Of a stretch of 64,000 bases of DNA, positions 18,240 through 27,497 are shown one piece after another; position 1 is the first letter of the stretch, and every line of letters starts with the position of its first letter. The DNA comes from Hyaloraphidium curvatum SAG 235-1. Lineage: Eukaryota; Fungi; Monoblepharomycota. Position numbers and translations under genes: made by a program. The notes beneath the pieces were generated by a model that worked only from the letters and a program-made list of their open reading frames with translations, did no database searches and was not told where the DNA came from. The DNA lies in contig JAIVFI010000025.1 in NCBI GenBank assembly GCA_025558095.1, forward strand, positions 310,001 to 374,000, read 5' to 3'.

Positions 18240-18770
18240 TCAGGGGGGCGGAGGTGTGTAGGGGAGCTGCTCCTGGATGATCTCCAGCATCCGATTGACT
18301 TCCTCTTCGACGAAACGGCCCTCGCAGTTCTCGATGATGCTGTAGAGATCGATTTGTTCAGTGGGCCGGAAGTTCAGGATCTGCAGCTTCTCCAGCTTCG
18401 TCAGCTTGAACTCCTTCATGTGCTCCAGGAAGGAAAGAATGATCTGCTCGCTCTGCTGCGCACAGGGTCTCTTGGCAAGGTACTTCCGCAGCTTCGGGCA
18501 CGACGTGTGAATAGGCGCGTCGCGGGGAAGTCTCCGGCTCCACGCACTTGGTAGTCAATAGACTGGAGGTCTCCAGAGTCCTCGTCCTTCTTCTCCTTCG
18601 CCTTCTCCCGCTTGTCGCGCCCCTTGCCATCGCGAGACTCCTTGAGCTCCCGGAGGAAATCGAACACTTCGTAGTCCGAAACTGTCGCGGGAGAGCCAAA
18701 TGAGCGGGTGCCGGGGCCGTGGCGGGATCGTGGCCGTACGGAACGCCGCTTGGACGTCGTCAATCTCCAT
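18240..18770 (-). CDS. RPC17: RNA polymerase III subunit C17/Rpc9 (Rpb4/HRDC-like)
   Basis: MEIDDVQAAF/LSDYEVFDFL...LQSIDYQ...FKLTKLEKLQILNFRPTEQIDLYSIIENCEGRF; TGA at 18240-18242. Confidence 0.85.
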
Positions 18771-18905
18771 CGCAGAGGTAACGCAGTAAGTGGCTACACA
18801 CATATGGAATGCTACTTGCCACCAAAAAGGCGGTCCTCTCGGACTCCACCTCGATCAAGCCCACAATCGGGCACAGGCGAGGGCTCGCACCACCCGCCAA
18901 TTTGT
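18771..18905 (-). ncRNA. Candidate Fanzor omegaRNA (scaffold at element 3' end plus flank-derived guide)
   Basis: Stem-loops at 18827-18852 (GAGGUG-GA-GUCC-GAGA-GGAC-CGCCUU, GNRA tetraloop), 18859-18872 and 18877-18888; position matches TnpB/Fanzor guide RNA loci; boundaries are guesses. Confidence 0.45.
18793..18819. repeat. Left imperfect terminal inverted repeat GCTACACACATATGGAATGCTACTTGC
   Basis: Matches the reverse complement of 27416-27442 with two identical 7-mers (CACACAT, TGCTACT) at identical spacing. Confidence 0.6.
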
Positions 18906-21900
18906 AGAGAAGAAAGATAAGAAGACCCACGGCCGGGGCCGTCCAGCCTGACCTTCTTGGCAGAGCCGCGTCCCCGCGCCACCGCACCAGGACGCTTGGG
19001 CACGGTGGGAACGGATCCGGTCTGAAGAGTGGTGCCTGCAACGCCATCAGCTCACACGCTCCAAAGCGAGCAAAATCAGCGTACCAGCGGACTTCGCGGC
19101 CGGCTTCGACGGCTTGCGCCTCCTGGTGTCAGGCTTGAACGGCCAGGGGCGCTCGCCACCGGTAGCGATCGCGAACCAGAACAGGTACCCGATGGACCGA
19201 CAGCTGTTGACGTCCCTCATCCAGTACGTGCGACAGGTCGGGCAGTACTTGGCGCCCCGGATCTCGCCACGGCACCCGGGGTTGGTGATGGGGACAACGT
19301 AGGTCGTCAGGCACCTGCCGAGAGGGCGATCAATGCCGCGAAATCAGGCGCGAAGTACGAGGGAAAACTCACTTTGAACACATCTGGCTCGTCAGGTACT
19401 CGTTGATCAAAACGAGGATTCCAACGGCCGCGAGCGCGGCCCTGAACTGCACAATCCGAGAAGCCGGACCGCCCTTGCTTGCGTGACCAAAGCGGGCGGC
19501 GCCATAGGCGAAGGTGGTCTGGGAATCGAACTTGCCCGAGTACGGGTTGCGACACAGGTCGCGGGCGATCCAGTCGAGCACCTGCCGACGCCTCCGGATG
19601 GTACGGACGCGGTCGCGGCTGCAAAAGAAGGCGTCAGGAAGGCTGCATCCCAATCACGCAGGCTGGCCGTGAACAAACCATATCTCATCATTGCAGTAGA
19701 ACTTGACGACGGAGCAGAGCTCCTTCGTGATGGCATGGGCGTACTTGCGAAACTGCTCGCAGCTCGTCGTCCGCTGCGAAGGCAGTGCCGATTCCCAAGC
19801 CTCGATTGTCAGGCCGGAGGGGAGGGTGTGCGACTTGCGCAGCGACGCCAGTTTCCTAGAAGCGTGCTGGTAACCACACATCCGGCGATCGAGGTCCCCA
19901 GGCACGCCGAGAATGAGCTCCGGAAGCTGGCGGACGCCGGCGCGCCCAAAGCCGGCGATACCACCCCAGAACCTGTCCCCGTCGGCATCGGACCCGCCGT
20001 CGGGGTTGGGGAAAAGCGTCCAGTTCCGTTCGGCCTTCCGCAGCTTCTCGTCGCGGTTCGCATGCCCGCGGTTGGTCGGGCGGTGAGCCGAGAGCTTGGC
20101 GGCGCCGTCCGGGTGGTGTCGGCAGCGGATGTTGCGCGGCGCCGCCTGCGTCGCCCGCGCAACGCGGGCCGTCTCGTCGCAGGAGTGTTCGAGCCGGATG
20201 TCCTTGATGCGGCCCGCAGAGATGCACCCCTTGGGCACGTTGGCGCGCACAAGAATGTATGTCGATGTGGTGCCGTCCGGGTTGGTGACGACGATCTTCT
20301 CCGAAAGCTCGGGTAGGTGGGTGTTGGCGAAGTCGAACCGTCTCCCCGGGCCGGGGTCCAGGCAGCGGGCCACAAACGCGGGTGCAAGTCGTCGACCGCC
20401 CTGCATATAGAACCAGCGATTTGGATCGCAAAAGACAACGCCACCAGAAACGGGAAGGCCCCGTTGGGCGGCATCCCACATCTCCTCTTCCGTTGCCATT
20501 GTTAGGAAGTGCGGCATTAGCTTCTCCGCGTCCGCCTTCCGGCTAAAGTTGTAGCACGGTATAGAGGTCTTCCAGTCAACAGGCGGACGAGGTATCGATG
20601 AGCACGTAGAGCGAGGGTGCGGTGGGAGAGGAGCGGAGGTTGGAGGCTGAGCAGGGGCAGGTGGAGAAGAGGGCGGAAGCGGAGAAGATCCTGCGGCACC
20701 CACAGGCGAGGCCGTCGGGATGGGAAGAGGAGGCGGAGGAGCGAGGGTGGGAGTGAAGGAGGATGGAGACTCGGAAGGTACCGATGTGGAGGAGTTCGGT
20801 GATGTTGCGGGTGGGGGTTCGGGGGGGATGGAGGCGGGAGGCGGGAGCCCGATCCAATCCTGATCCACGTCCATCCACGTGAAAGGAGTCGAGTCGGGAT
20901 CTACCAGCAAGTGCTCGGCATCGTCGGTAATGGCGGGCGGGGGGAAGAAGACGGTCCCGCCAGCATGGAGCCAGCCGTGAGCTTGAAGATGAACACATCA
21001 GCAGCGCTGAGTGCAGCGGCAAGGATGACATACCATCAACGACGGCCATGCCCGGCGGGGGGTCCGGAGCACCGTGCGGAAGGGTGGGCACGAGGACCGC
21101 GGGCATCCCGAACGAATCTTGGGCCGAAAAGTCGTGCCAGTGGGCGTGCTGTTCTGGCTCCGTACACTCCCAACACGGCTCGGGCGATGGCGCGCTGAGG
21201 AAGACTGTTGGGAAGCAGGTTAGGCGCGGAAGCTCCGATGAAAGAACGGGGACCTACAATCCAAGGGCGGCGTCACTTTGGGCTCAGATTCCGTCCACTG
21301 CTGCTGCGGTGCCTTCGGCTTCGAAGCCCTGGGCACGACGGCCATGTGCTCCTCGACAATGGCAAAGGTTGGGCCACGAAGAACCATGCCAGCAATGCAC
21401 GAGCAGTGCAGCGCATCGCCCGACCGGCGAAGGGTCGGCCGTGAGGCGTCCGCGTGCCCTGCCGGGGAGCGCTTCCCCTCCTGATGGAGGCGGAAAAGAC
21501 GCTCGTCCTGAACAATTTTGTTGCCATTGTTGAACAGGTGTCCAAACAGGTAATCGGGGTTGATCTTGGCCACGTCCGGTGCCAAGGGGCCGAGCTTAAC
21601 ACCGAGCATCTTGAAGAGGTCGGGCAGATCGCTCGCGGTTATGTACAGGGCTATGGGGGTGAGGGAAATCCTGGTCAAGAGCGGCCGGATCCCGCCCGCG
21701 GCCCAGGTCCCTCCGGTGGTGCCGCCTTGGGTCCTTGACTGCTGTTGTTCATGAAACGTATCAGAATGACGACCTCACCACGGGAGAGAACGCGTCACCC
21801 ACGCTCTTCTCCCCGCTCCCTCCGGCCGCGCTGGACCATCGGCGAGCCGCCACACGTGACTTCCCCAATCGCTTCTTCACCTTGCCCTCGGGCGACAGCG

Positions 21901-24900
21901 GCGCCCGCTTCTTCCCCGTCGTGACGTAGCCATGGAATCGCTTGGGTGCCCCGTTCTTCGGCCACGGCTTGGGGTCCACTCGGATCGGTCGGCCCTTTTT
22001 CGACTTCTGCTTCCCGCCGCCGATCGTGGGGAAGTCGTCAGCAGCCTCAACATTGCCGTCTTCCGAGTCGGAGCACTCCATGTCCGCGCAAAGCAGGTCC
22101 ACGGCGGCACTTCCGCGGAACAGAGTCGCAGAGGGTCCACCACCCTCCGCCTCGTTCGCAGGGTCAACGTCCATTGCGGCCTCGGTGGTGAAGCTGGCGG
22201 CGACGCGCCGAGCGCTGTCCGCCGCACTCGATGATGAAGGTGTCGGTGTCGAGCTTTGCGGCAAGGCCGTCGGGCTTGGTTCAGATCCGGTCGAGGCAAC
22301 GCTTGACGATCGCCGCATCTTGAGCCTCGCGATCTGCTCCTCCCGCAGCCGCATAGTCTGAAAGAGAGCCTCGGAGCCAAACGCGTCCGCGTCCGCGCAT
22401 TTGCCCGTCTGCGCGAGGCGAAGTTCAGCTGTGCTCAGCTGACGCGCCCTCTGCCTCTCATCGAGCAGCTCCCTCTCGTAGCGCTGCAACAGCGCCTCCT
22501 TGTCCAGGCCCTCCGTCCACTCCGGCCCCCAAAAGCGGCTCTTTGTGGGGTGGATGCCAACCCCCTGCACGGAGGGGATCTCGACGGGGATGCCACGCAA
22601 CTGCAGCTTGTCAGCCACATACGTCTCGACCAGTTCGTGCCGCTCCTCCTCCTGCAGTTGCCTGATCGCTTCAGGCGGCATCCGGCGGAGTTCGGCTTGG
22701 GCCCGGTCGCGCAGATCCAGCAGGTACGCCGCCTTTGCGTCCTCCTCGTCCTGCGACTTGCCGCGCGCCTTCTGCGGCGATATGGCGACGCTGCGGATAC
22801 GCGTCGCCATCGCCGACCGCTTCAGCTCCACGTCCCGCTTCCTCAGCGAAAGCATCACGCGCTGTAGGACAGTCGCTGGCCATTTTGGCCGGTCGCGGGG
22901 CTCCCGCAGGTCCATGATCGTATTCAGCGAGCGTCCGGATAGCGGCAGGAGTAGCCAGGTCAGGCGAAGCCGAGCCTCCGCGTCAAACTCGGGGCTGCAG
23001 CCAAAGGCCGCGAAGCTGGTGCCGAAAAAGTTCGTATCACCCGTCCCGAGCTTGGCCAGCACGCAGCGCAAGATGTGGCCAATCTTTTGCCGCTTCACGG
23101 CGTTGTCCAGCTCCTCCTTCAGGAAGGTGCGGATCAGGTCCGAAAGCTCCTTGCGCAGCTGGATGGGGACGGTGCGGAGGCGTCCTGCGGCAAGATTCCT
23201 GAAGTAACCGAGCAGCGGGCCGCGCAGCAGGTAGTGGTGCCAGTCGGCAAACTCGGAAGCCAGGTCCGGCCTCAGCTCGTGGTAGGCGTCGGTGACTACC
23301 GCCCGCAGAACCGCAGCCGCCGCGTTATGCTCCTCCACGGAGAGGGTGCCGGGACCGTCAAAAACCTCGCCGTCGTCGGCCATCCCGTCGCCACCGAAGC
23401 CGGCGCCCAGAGCTTCCAGCGCGTGTTCAGGTCCGTCGGCTTCCCCCTCGCCGGCCAGGAAGTCCGCGAACCCGGCGTATTCACCGAAATCTCCGCCCTC
23501 CTCTTCTTCTTCCCCATCTTCGGCAGCGGGCTCGTCATCGTCCTCCGCCATTTCCGTGACCGTGCCGAGTCCCGCGCCAGTTGCGGTGATCTCCACGCCC
23601 GGATCCGTGCCGATGTCCCCGCGCGGCTTCTTCCTCCGGCGTGTGCCTGCGTTGGCGTTTAGCGCCCCCTCGTTCAAAACCACCAGCATCGCCATGTTCG
23701 CTACGACGGAAGGTGGGAACTTGCGCAGGATGGCAGGGGGAACGGAGCGGTTGTCCAGCAGACCGTTGTATACTGCCAGCATCGCCGAGGTCCAGACGAG
23801 CTTTGCAAAGGACGCCGCACCGGTTGCGGCGCGGGAAATGAGCAGCCCCACGCTCTTGAGCGGCTCGATCGCCCAGGGGTGGAGGGCCTCCTCGGGCAAG
23901 AACCAGGTTGTCGACATGGCGCGCTCGGTCACGTGCCGCTCGTGCTCCGCATCCCCGACGGCCTTGTACGCATTCTCCGCAGCTTGCCGCAAAGCCGGCC
24001 GGCATCCTCGCCGGTGTCCCCGGGTTGTCGACAGGCAGAGGTGGCACCTGGGCTCCTTTGCCGCGCAACCTTCGTCCTTCGCCCCGTCTACGTCCATCGC
24101 CGTTGCTCCGGCGGCAGCACTCTCCGCTTCCGTTGCTTGAGTGCGGCAGGCGTGCGGCACAATGTAGTTGACCTGGGCGAGCAGCAGTCCGCGCCGTGAT
24201 GTGAAGGCCCGGGGGATGACGAGGCTGGGACAGCGAGGATGAGTAATGACCCCGTGTGGATCTCTTGCGGAGACCTACTGGAGAGGAGCATCTGCATGCT
24301 GGGTTTCCACGTGTTCCCGGTACTTGGCCTCGAACGCAAACGTGACACGCCTGCCGTCTTTGCGGCAGATCTGGCACGTAAAGTGCTTCCCCGCGACGTG
24401 ATGCCCGAGCCGCACGCCAGCGTCGTACTGGCGCTGATCCGACGACTTGCCGGCCGTAGCGCCGTTCGCGTCCTTTCTCTTCCGCTCCGGGTTCCGAGCC
24501 GGCACCCGGCCCTCGACCGCCACTGTGAAGGGACAATAAAGGCATCCGAGGGAACAGATGTCGACGCGCTTGGCGTCAAAGGCCTTTTCGAGCGCGTCCA
24601 ACTTCAGGTGGAACGCGACGCTCGCGCGACGGGCGGCGTCGCTGACAGGGTTCACGAGCGAATCGAACCCCCAATAGTCCAGCAAATGGTCGCGCATCGG
24701 GTGGCCAGAAAAGATCAACTCAAACAGGACCGAGCGCCCCTCCTCTCCGTGCACAGCAGCCAAAGCCTTGTCGAAGAACGAGCCGAGGTCCGCGTCCGCC
24801 CTTTCGCTCACGCCTCTTAGCCCCTTCGTGGGCTGGAAGATCTCGTAGAAGGTCAGCGGCTGCGAGGAGTGCACCGTCAGCCCAGAATGCTGGAGCTGGA

Positions 24901-27393
24901 AGCCAGAACGTTGCTCACCAGCGCGGGCACCGGACCACGATCCGGTATGCCCAGGAGCGCCTCGTTGGCCTTCATGGGGCCCCAGAGGAAGGTTTCGAAG
25001 AAGATGCGGCGCTGTTCAGCCTGCTGAAAGGCAATGTCCTTGGGCAAGTCCGTGCGGACAACGAGCGCCATGCGCTCTTCCAGAGTCAGGCTGGCGAGCG
25101 CAACCTCGAGCGAACGACTCCTCCGATCCCACAGGGCTTTCCCGGACGCGTTCTTGAGCGCGCCGAGGGCGTCCTCCAGGATCTTGCGCCAGTTCTGCGG
25201 CCGGCGGAGGTGGGTCTGGGCTGGGAGCTCGAAGTCCTCCACGGGTATGAGCCCGGCTTCCGGCTGGCGAACGAAGTGCCGCACTCGAGCAAGGAATACG
25301 GAATGGACGAAATCATCCAAACGAGCCGCATCACTCGCCATCAGCCGCCCACGCAGACGGATCTCGGTCGCTGCCGTCCAGCGGTGGAAGCCTCCTTCAC
25401 GGTCGACCGCCACCAGGCGCGAGACAAAAAGTCGTTCCTTCCTCGTCGCGGAGAGGGACGAGTAACTGCCGTCCGGACGACCCTGGTCCAGGTCGGAAAG
25501 CCCGGCACAGCACGCGTACTTGACAGCCTCACGCAGGTCCTTGGGCACGGTCGGCTCCAGAGCGTAGTCCAGCAGAGCGTCCAGCTGCGCCCCCGGGGCT
25601 CCGACAACGGCTGGAGCGAAAATCGGGTTCGCTAAAACAGTTGGAAAGAGCGGCGGAGGCGGCGAGAGGCCGGAAGGGGTGCCCGCGGTGGCCGGCGATG
25701 GTTCGTCGGCGACGGGCGCGGGGAGCCGACGTCGCTCGACGAAGTTCCGCAGCTTCCGGCAGAGGGCCGCGCGGACCTCCTTGCCTTTGCCTTTCTCGAC
25801 TGCGGAGCATATTCCGCGGAACTGGTCGGGAGGGAGGGAGGTGAGGGTGCCGATGACGTCCTTGGAGGCGGTGGCGCGGGCGTTCTGCAGCTCGTCCAGA
25901 AACGTGTTCCACGCCGATCCGAAAGCACCTCCATTACTGAGTCCTCGTAGTCGGCCATAGAGCTGGTTCACATCGTAGGCCTTGTGGACGTCGACCTCGG
26001 CCACTCCGAGTTCCCGGGCCTGGGAAGTCAAACGGAGGTCGGCACGCGTCAATGACGACGGCGACGAGTTCCCCACCTCCTGCAGCAGGCGGGCCGCTTC
26101 TCGAGCAGCGATGCCGTCGTCCACCGCGTTCCTGGGCGCGGCCCCGGGACCCGGTCCGGTGTCCATGCGGGTCGAGTTTGTGTCTCCCGTGATCTCGCCA
26201 GTTGCCGTTTCCGGTTGTATGCACCCGCTCGTGGAACCAAGGTTGTCGGACCGAAGCATCTCCCGCTGAATGCGCGCCTTCTCTTCCGCGCTGAGCTTGA
26301 TGCAGTGCCGAAAAGTGGGACAGAGATCGCTCTCCCCAACAATTCGTATCGCCCTCTCGACAGCGTCAATCAGATCGGCCACAGTGGAGGGACAGTCTCG
26401 CCGGACAAGGCGCTTCAACCGCCCTATCACGCGCTCACTCGCATTGAACTCGGGAGTACGGGGTCGCAGGTACACGAGGTTGAGGTTGTTGGCTTTCGCC
26501 ACCGCCTGAACCGCGAGGAACGATTTGCCGGAGGTGTTCTCTACAATCGCAGTACCATTTGCGGTCTTCTTTGCCCTCAAAGGGGATCCATGGTAACCAG
26601 CATTGTCAATCACAATGTTCAGCGCGTTCTTGGGGCCCTGTCCGTCTGCCTTAACAGACCTCAAGAAAGCGCAGAATCGCTCCGTGTTCATATTGCCACG
26701 GTAGATCACATACGAGATCACCGTTCCAGCAACTGCTCCCGGACGAGGACTTGGTGACACTGCGAGACACAGAGTCACCTTTGGACCTCTATTCCGCGGG
26801 AGGTAGACAACAGCGCGGCTTCCGCGGTCCGAGTACCCGTGGCTGCCCGGGTCGTTGAGCTCGAAAGCCGTTTCGTCCAGTGCGACCATGCGTTCCATAG
26901 GCACATTCTCGATGCGACTATGAAACAGAAGATGCCTTTCCGGTTGCCGTAAGGCCTCGGAAGACTTGACGGTGAGCCTCTTCCTAGTGACGCCATTTGC
27001 CTTCAGCAGCCGCGAAACGTGCTGCTGGGAGACGCGGATCCCGTACTTTTCTGCCAGAAAAAGAACTAGCTCCTGCTGGGTGACCCTGACCTGGCTTTTT
27101 GCCTCGTGTACGATGTCCTGGACCATCTGGTCCGTGACCTTGCGGCGGCTCCGGACCTTGCGAACTCCCTCTCTCGATGCCGGGGGCAGCGATGCCCACT
27201 TGATCCAACGAAAATAGGTCGTGCGATGTACTCCCAACGACGCAGAAATCTCCGCCGAGCTCAGCTTCCCAGTCTGCTTGAGCCGAGTTGCGATGGCGGG
27301 GCCGTCCACCAACATTGGCGTCCGGGGCACAGGTAGTTGTGAAGAAGCCCGAGGCGCAGAGTTTGCAGATGGAGATGCCAAGGCCACTGGCAT
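18812..27393 (-). CDS. Predicted single spliced gene encoding a DDE transposase-Fanzor1 fusion (~2,650-2,710 aa, 8-9 exons)
   Basis: Predicted exons 27393-24919, 24859-24279, 24224-21803, 21741-21258, 21204-21034, 20981-19679, 19618-19373, 19314-19085, 19035-18812 (or stop at 19047 if the last intron is retained). Introns are 49-61 nt GT..AG with CTRAY-like branch sites, and each restores the frame. Confidence 0.7.
19085..20370 (-). other. Fanzor1/TnpB-like RuvC nuclease and zinc-finger module
   Basis: RuvC-I CLDPG (D at 20356-20358); Fanzor1-type IEAWESALPSQRT..FRKY..VVKFY and RRQVLD..FAYGAARF; RuvC-II INEYLTSQ (E at 19399-19401); CSKC..CPTC zinc ribbon; RuvC-III WMRDVNS (D at 19212-19214) followed by G.RPWPF. 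Confidence 0.88.
26290..27393 (-). other. IS630/Tc1-mariner transposase domain (HTH + DDE)
   Basis: HTH (SAEISASLGVHRTTYFRW; TQQELVLFLAEKYGIRVSQQHVSRLLKANGVTRKR); catalytic ALDETAF (D173), VIDNAGYH (D263), YLRPRTPEFNASE (E320). Confidence 0.9.
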
Positions 27394-27415
27394 TGGGGCG
27401 CTGCCGGCGGAAACA

Positions 27416-27442
27416 GCTAGTAGCAGAGGCGATGTGTGCGAC
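27416..27442. repeat. Right imperfect terminal inverted repeat (reverse complement GTCGCACACATCGCCTCTGCTACTAGC)
   Basis: Partner of 18793-18819; immediately followed by TAAGTG. Confidence 0.6.
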
Positions 27443-27497
27443 TAAGTGAACCGGTGCCGGCTGTGATCGACGCGACGGGAAAACAGCGCGATCAACG

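Follow-up and report, generated by a model that had tools for sequence, protein, structure and literature searches.

A transposon of Hyaloraphidium curvatum joins a DDE transposase and a Fanzor1 protein in one spliced reading frame, with insertions uniformly spaced from a host motif

The window analysed here is a stretch of 64,000 nucleotides of the fungus Hyaloraphidium curvatum SAG 235-1 (assembly GCA_025558095.1, contig JAIVFI010000025.1, positions 310,001 to 374,000). On its minus strand lies a transposon, here called family A, that carries the terminal inverted repeats of the IS630/Tc1/mariner kind and is occupied almost entirely by a single gene (Table 1). Family A is a young, recently active cut-and-paste transposon: besides the window copy, the genome contigs hold four more, 99.8-100% identical and with unrelated flanks. 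A terminal-repeat search of the genome returned no non-autonomous copies sharing these ends and no orphan ends. The window copy interrupts an ~80-bp intergenic interval of two head-to-head genes, 53 and 27 nt from their start codons.

Table 1. Features of the family A element and its insertion site (positions within the window)
Feature	Positions	Strand	Remarks
Whole transposon, family A	18791..27444	minus	8,654 bp; 5 copies in genome
Left terminal inverted repeat	27419..27444	minus	26 bp, imperfect, bipartite
Right terminal inverted repeat	18791..18816	minus	26 bp; contains stop codon 18812-18814
Left copy of 2-bp target duplication	27445..27446	minus	CT here; CC, CG at other family A copies
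Right copy of 2-bp target duplication	18789..18790	minus	
Host target motif GCGYCGATC(A)	27464..27475	minus	conserved end exactly 20 nt before left end
Exon 1	24919..27393	minus	HTH and DDE transposase, then ~450-aa helical region
Conserved start Met27	27315	minus	sister family B begins here; copy C4 lacks Met1
Intron 1	24860..24918	minus	phase 0; fusion junction
Exon 2	24279..24859	minus	pair of C2H2-type zinc fingers; same ligands throughout four families
Intron 2	24225..24278	minus	phase 2; common to families B and C
Exon 3	21803..24224	minus	long region, helical and acidic, with a Cys/His knuckle
Intron 3	21742..21802	minus	missing in family B
Exon 4	21258..21741	minus	
Intron 4	21205..21257	minus	missing in family B
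Exon 5	21034..21204	minus	terminates in VVD|G
Intron 5	20982..21033	minus	
Exon 6	19679..20981	minus	Pro-rich linker, RuvC-I CDPN, ~150-aa Cys/His insertion, helices superposing on SpuFz1 404-470
Intron 6	19619..19678	minus	
Exon 7	19373..19618	minus	bridge helix region and RuvC-II NEY (E2552 at 19401)
Intron 7	19315..19372	minus	interrupts first CxxC of zinc ribbon
Exon 8	19085..19314	minus	zinc ribbon and RuvC-III RDVN (D2595 at 19214)
Intron 8	19036..19084	minus	spliced in RNA
Exon 9	18812..19035	minus	basic tail; overlaps candidate omega-RNA
Candidate omega-RNA scaffold	18791..18905	minus	conserved core, then hairpin

A preliminary description, made from the letters alone, had proposed that the open reading frames of this region join through introns into a giant transposase-Fanzor1 fusion. 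The eight introns it placed proved exact: all have GT-AG borders and measure 49-61 nt, no exon is interrupted by a stop in the frame needed, and RNA-derived contigs of one run (X1) omit precisely the same intervals. X1 depth in the bins that contain introns 1, 2, 6, 7 and 8 also drops by exactly the intron length; X1 therefore represents spliced RNA. With all eight introns removed, the model yields a product of 2,711 aa, frameshift-free as foreseen. Keeping intron 8, which had been called optional, would give 2,649 aa; this intron is spliced in X1 and its retained form was not assembled. No other intron-retained form is found among the X1 contigs either, including one that keeps intron 1, which would bring in an in-frame stop at 24877 and leave a predicted transposase-only protein of 838 aa. 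The start first assigned at 27393 does lie in open frame, the conserved start being instead Met27, from which the product measures 2,685 aa.

RNA support for junctions 24919/24859 and 24279/24224 had been named as a check, and both are spliced in X1. Junction 2 is carried by one contig, and junction 1 has the same depth and a single contig, which links the transposase exon to exons 2 and 3. The link onward to the RuvC exons runs through a chain of abutting contigs, from which we infer the continuity of the 8-kb mRNA as a single molecule. X1 comes from one study and consists of assembled contigs, in which rare forms are dropped and transcript starts and ends are not visible. Two of its alleles match copies C16, C5 and C4 while adjacent sites follow the majority, a mixture indicating that the RNA signal is pooled over copies. 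Depth climbs up to 2.3-fold toward the 3' part, which fits either 3' bias or an additional internal start.

In profile searches, which like the homologue and structure searches were run exon by exon rather than on the joined protein, exon 1 matches DDE_3 above the cut-off (E 3e-12) together with HTH profiles, and the triad D173 (26877), D263 (26607) and E320 (26436) is invariant in four families. The N-terminal HTH and intact triad of the preliminary description are thereby borne out, and they are the combination that marks an IS630/Tc1/mariner transposase; the spacing is D56E owing to a ~22-aa insertion common to all four families. The metal ligands of the two exon 2 fingers are likewise unchanged across the four. 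By profile, the ~1,700 aa between the two enzymes match nothing, and profile and structure searches with exon 3, which is probably an expanded REC part of the Fanzor, gave no match. The predicted fold of exon 1 (pLDDT 36) was too low for use. Searches of single exons against PDB sequences and word-based homologue searches with exons 1 and 6 came back empty or weak, and a scan of JGI metagenomes returned distant IS630 fragments only.

In the C-terminal half, a TnpB-type RuvC-II, a C4 zinc ribbon and an RD motif follow one another in Fanzor1 order. Exon 7 has nine environmental relatives (E to 5e-12), all nine above the PF07282 cut-off, and their alignment extends through exon 8; a failure of the C-terminus against TnpB/Fanzor profiles, named beforehand as counter-evidence to the fusion, did not occur. 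The profile built from the nine relatives has weak hits in the PDB, all of them to TnpB, Cas12 or the two Fanzor1 proteins of solved structure. Among the motifs originally proposed, NEY, the zinc ribbon and RDVN hold, while DPG (20358) falls away as RuvC-I, being Asn in family B and missing in relatives; the true aspartate is D2230 in CDPN (20427), in which DPN is conserved. The catalytic D, E and D are intact, the glutamate standing at the rearranged NEY position, and DPN, NEY and RD are kept in families A, B and C and in the relatives. A low-confidence model of exon 6 has SpuFz1 as its sole high-probability Foldseek row (0.92, E 1.2); the helices can be superposed on residues 404-470 of that protein (Z 4.4, rmsd 2.1, 67 aligned), the region between catalytic D383 and E541. 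The D-X(125,275)-[TS][TS] spacing of Fanzor1 is exceeded, at ~325 residues, because of the ~150-aa insertion after RuvC-I. The WED motif TDG is found in families C and L041 and is degenerate in A and B, where the end of exon 5 appears to correspond in place to the TDG of family C. The Fanzor1 assignment is one of C-terminal motifs and profile rather than of a tree with reference Fanzors. The Fanzor1 part is expanded and its catalytic residues are intact, with RNA-guided cleavage of double-stranded DNA as a predicted activity.

The search for further copies and homologues that the preliminary description suggested yielded, besides the five copies of family A, two families with the same fusion. 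Family B, in the same genome, has ten copies of ~8.63 kb with all exon pieces collinear with A (model 2,653 aa); introns 1, 2, 5, 6, 7 and 8 are common in position and phase, and introns 3 and 4 are missing. Identity between A and B is 35-80%, and 84% in exon 7. Synonymous sites are saturated (pS 0.55-0.70), pN is lower in every segment and lowest in the DDE and RuvC exons, and exons 1-3 are conserved straight through their junctions. Family C, from another organism in ENA metagenomes, measures 10.4 kb and has similar termini; its model of 3,170 aa, with introns that are predicted only, is in frame with both triads in 6 of 9 contigs. By these models the in-frame fusion appears to have been retained in three families. 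With the RNA junctions, the introns common to B and the in-frame family C, we state with high confidence that DDE transposase and Fanzor1 form a single spliced reading frame.

Comparison of insertion sites reveals an unexpected rule. Among the A and B copies, eleven are flanked by 2-bp duplications (CT, CC, CG, TG, TG, CC, AC, AT, CC, GC and CG), none of them TA; the 2-bp length of IS630/Tc1/mariner duplications is retained and their TA sequence is not. A 6-bp or TA duplication was ruled out by this copy comparison. In all three duplicated A copies, the motif GCGYCGATC ends exactly 20 nt from the left end; in the other two the motif lies nearer and the junction is lost, for which deletions of 3 and 15 nt would account. 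Family B has a different motif, AAGGGRYTKC, ending 22 nt from the left end in 8 of 10 copies and in 8 of the 9 left ends that are duplicated or intact. Random sets never equalled the observed alignment (0/20,000 for A and 0/20,000 for B; permutation p<5e-5 each), held-out sites still score well in leave-one-out analysis (p 1e-3 to 1e-7 for most), and neither profile recognises the sites of the other family. At one B copy, C5, the duplication is clean, while the motif is weak and displaced by 4 nt. Insertion is oriented and lies at a constant spacing downstream of a family-specific ~10-bp motif, a behaviour characteristic of CRISPR-associated transposons (CASTs): in A and B, the transposase no longer follows the TA rule and instead inserts in one orientation at a set distance from a motif.

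The signal lies on one side only, since the right flanks of A and B hold no conserved motif. Nor is there an adjacent TAM at the left end, the last 18 nt of A and B left flanks being without conservation; conservation of the distal motif stops abruptly on its insertion-facing side, as in a TAM. In family C the distal motif is missing from four intact left flanks, which give a weak signal next to the left end (p ~0.03); judged by these four flanks, targeting either is not common to all families or works differently in C. The family A 11-mer occurs 282 times in the genome, against 36 for a control that is unmatched and contains CTAG, and in the window the motif is no commoner than dinucleotide shuffles predict. 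An enriched host promoter element was rejected as its identity on the strength of these shuffles. In SpuFz1 the cut lies 16-21 nt beyond the TAM (PMC10432273), so insertion falls approximately where a Fanzor R-loop would end.

Near the right end, a conserved core followed by a hairpin is the likely candidate for an omega-RNA. Its 21-nt core (18840-18860) is identical in 15 of 15 A and B copies, each of which has different flanks, and distant metagenomic relatives have a related layout of core and hairpin; against shuffles, folding is unremarkable (z -0.5 to -1.3). The core is found nowhere else in the genome, and guide-only ghost loci were accordingly discarded. For family A, a guide in the canonical position would come from the right flank. 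Right-flank guides in A, B and C matched left flanks no better than chance and were likewise set aside. The preliminary description had supposed that the tether might couple guide-directed recognition to excision, homing or integration. Coupling of transposase and nuclease gains from the oriented, fixed-distance integration; steering by a guide does not, since neither the element nor any of its right flanks contains a match to the family A motif.

Several known systems share parts of this arrangement. PGv-1 and PUl-1 are Tc1/mariner elements that carry Fanzor1 (Bao and Jurka 2013, PMC3627910) and resemble family A in their TIRs, in a DDE transposase 5' and a Fanzor1 3', and in the order of RuvC-II, zinc ribbon and RD; by contrast, their proteins are separate and all their copies have TA duplications, whereas family A has a single spliced polypeptide, a variable 2-bp duplication, a distal motif and a D-to-TS spacing of ~325 aa instead of 125-275. 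Spu-1 of Spizellomyces punctatus is a ~2.1-kb single-ORF element without a transposase, in which conserved flank bases and a CATA TAM adjoin the left end (Saito et al. 2023, PMC10432273; PDB 8GKH, 9CEZ). Its SpuFz1 shares the DxN, E, RD active-site pattern, the helices matched by exon 6 and a candidate omega-RNA at the right TIR; A and B differ in having no motif adjacent to the left end and a Fanzor part of up to ~1,500 aa. The IS630-linked TnpBs of the DDE-6 branch, mainly prokaryotic or from giant viruses and with a proposed link to Fanzors, likewise pair an IS630 DDE transposase with a TnpB homologue between symmetrical ends, but as associated genes, and neither fusion nor targeting is described there (Altae-Tran et al. 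2023, PMC10691335). TAMs are read by protein and track the transposase target, and they adjoin the left end and include the duplication (PMC13565253). Fanzor and transposase are separate proteins throughout PMC3627910, PMC10691335, PMC10530073 and PMC13565253.

Similar in insertion behaviour are type V-K CASTs, which arose from fixed-guide TnpB, and engineered TniQ-TldR fusions (10.1101/2025.08.27.672191): there too, an effector derived from TnpB is linked to a DDE transposase, and insertion is oriented and evenly spaced from a recognised site. CASTs, by contrast, are Tn7 elements made up of several proteins, their effector is nuclease-dead and their guidance by RNA is proven; the element here is one protein with an intact RuvC and possible RNA guidance, and profile searches of its exons found no Tn7 TnsB, TnsC or TniQ domains. 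A natural Fanzor-DDE fusion was not found in the literature searched, a scope that leaves outside most subscription papers and Repbase. The fusion element is apparently undescribed; it belongs with the DDE transposons that bear a Fanzor, but its rule of target choice is unexpected. Among protein-targeted transposons, Tn7 (through TnsD), Dada and Pokey insert at a defined distance from the sequence that a protein recognises. To our knowledge, none of these is fused to an RNA-guided nuclease.

We favour, with moderate confidence, protein-read targeting of the tethered transposase combined with RNA-guided homing. The DDE domain is free of the TA rule, though its duplications are still 2 bp long; the C-terminal half, through an enlarged TAM reader or the zinc fingers, would contact the family-specific motif by protein, and the tethered DDE domain would then insert the element in the observed orientation and position, 20-22 nt downstream. 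The omega-RNA at the right end, if it acts as TnpB/Fanzor biology suggests, would take its guide from the right flank and serve restorative homing, in which anchor motif plus guide match would license a RuvC cut of the emptied site, to be repaired from the filled copy. Fusion would allow integration and homing to use one target-reading module. That family A and its right flanks contain no match to their own motif counts for protein reading, as do the abrupt edge of motif conservation, the comparable cutting span of SpuFz1 and the fact that known TAMs are read by protein. Damage is concentrated at the left ends of all three families, compatible with repeated attack by a putative motif-anchored protein. 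Against protein-read targeting with homing stand the known TAMs, which are 2-5 nt long and touch the left end; there is no precedent for a ~10-bp motif set back by 20 nt, and homing by way of it is a guess. The motif is also tied to no domain, family C lacks it, and family B carries a match to its own. This match bears on a possible but distinctly less probable reading, RNA-guided integration, in which the Fanzor-omega-RNA would find the site by TAM and short seed pairing and the DDE domain would insert at a fixed distance, the spacing and orientation being typical of CASTs and Cas12k itself descending from fixed-guide TnpB. Before its terminal repeat, family B has 55 extra non-coding nt, missing in A, with a 12-mer that fits the target profile better than any other part of the element (14.4 bits, which falls among the scores of real sites; over the last 190 nt E 0.002, and 0.04 omitting the most similar site); it lies ~40 nt past the conserved hairpin, the distance at which the right flank starts in A, and there is partial complementarity between the RNA core and the A motif (E 0.09). 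However, 2 of the 12 positions of the 12-mer disagree with the site consensus, one of these being well conserved, and the 12-mer itself forms a hairpin; A has neither the segment nor a guide match; the core occurs at no other locus and is the same in A and B although their motifs differ; and RuvC is intact, unlike in Cas12k.

Other readings assign the motif or the fusion a lesser part. A host DNA-binding protein could read the motif and recruit the transposase, as in Ty3/Tf1-like tethering, leaving the Fanzor half for homing only; the position of the window copy between closely spaced start codons and the 282 genomic occurrences of the 11-mer agree with such tethering, but two sister families in one host have unrelated motifs, the motif does not exceed shuffles in the window, and base-exact spacing better suits direct reading, which makes it unlikely. 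We find it more improbable still that integration is untargeted and that the Fanzor, once a copy has been excised, can restore only those with a motif at the correct spacing. Such survival bias would accommodate the shifted motif of B copy C5 and the motif-free family C; sites this good are rare by the held-out scores, though, so that almost all insertions would have had to be lost without trace, and orphan ends were not found. Least probable, to a degree that we would be surprised to see it upheld, is a minor fused mRNA or a cleaved protein, with a transposase made by retention of intron 1 acting separately from the Fanzor. The stop inside intron 1, the rise in depth toward the 3' part and the blindness of contigs to rare forms, starts and ends leave room for separate proteins; the absence of retained intron 1 from the assembled contigs, the conserved position and phase of the junction and the conservation of exons 1-3 across their junctions argue the other way.

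The role of Fanzors in cut-and-paste elements is an open question, and here both enzymes are parts of one predicted protein, expressed as RNA, in young, intact, multi-copy elements. The product may amount to a naturally occurring targeted inserter of DNA that consists of a single protein. Since one genome contains two sister families with unlike motifs, domains and guides could be exchanged between them in direct comparisons. If protein steers integration, this would be a rare sequence-targeted eukaryotic DNA transposon in which a TnpB-family protein has turned targeting module. If RNA steers it, the element would be a single-component eukaryotic counterpart of CASTs, a one-polypeptide RNA-guided transposase that integrates an element of 8-10 kb and whose target could be reprogrammed through RNA. 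From coordinates only, the genome holds at least six further same-strand transposase-Fanzor pairs, 8-23 kb apart.

The copy of the element in the window, a member of family A, interrupts a head-to-head intergenic interval of ~80 bp (window flanks 27445-27497 and 18764-18790). One flanking gene belongs to the RPC17/Rpb4 family (PF03874); the other is a candidate BUD32-like kinase, recognized by eye from an unspliced piece that has no Pfam match.

Across family A, its sister family B and the metagenomic family C, junction deletions and small indels at left ends are concentrated at the end itself or ≤45 nt from it (loci L023, L024, L025, L032, L033, L034, L035, L048, L052 and L054). Right ends in these families are almost always undamaged, the exception being family B copy C35, a copy that also carries a nonsense change. 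Contig 5 of the RNA-derived set X1, at 6,636 nt, is long enough to reach ~2.7 kb past the left end of the element; a copy may therefore have been co-assembled or co-transcribed with its flank.

On the right side, family B has a 55-nt segment containing a 12-mer resembling the target motif (L026 9875-9929) that is missing from family A, and in the metagenomic relative L044 the right end is likewise long, with several hairpins. In a post hoc observation, four of the eight right flanks from family C (L049, L051, L052 and L053) contain GATCA at a depth of 13-21 nt, without a fixed position; the expectation is about 6% per flank.

Within family B, a few variable sites in the alignment disagree with the main grouping of copies and may reflect gene conversion. 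Copy C7b has an in-frame deletion of 171 bp, and a broken remnant of a related transposase adjoins a family B copy (L027 1-1100; C15:543651-545093). Compared with family C, a fourth family (L047 1300-1720) has an exon 1 that appears to be frameshifted after its DDE domain.

The genome holds at least six more same-strand pairs in which matches to related transposases and Fanzors are spaced 8-23 kb apart; these are possibly more and longer fusion families. Seven other Fanzor-like RuvC-II matches, with no match to this element's transposase close by, each lie within an open frame of 670-1,230 aa.

Other transposase and Fanzor matches in the H. curvatum genome (contig:position)
Feature	Location
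Same-strand transposase-Fanzor pair	C2:426463-435555
Same-strand transposase-Fanzor pair	C2:397365-406427
Same-strand transposase-Fanzor pair	C23:297266-315274
Same-strand transposase-Fanzor pair	C13:321446-344221
Same-strand transposase-Fanzor pair	C15:359125-378743
Same-strand transposase-Fanzor pair	C3:874425-890460
Lone Fanzor-like RuvC-II match	C14:724859
Lone Fanzor-like RuvC-II match	C31:259843
Lone Fanzor-like RuvC-II match	C2:359651
Lone Fanzor-like RuvC-II match	C34:485785
Lone Fanzor-like RuvC-II match	C2:417657
Lone Fanzor-like RuvC-II match	C1:1445031
Lone Fanzor-like RuvC-II match	C7:693803
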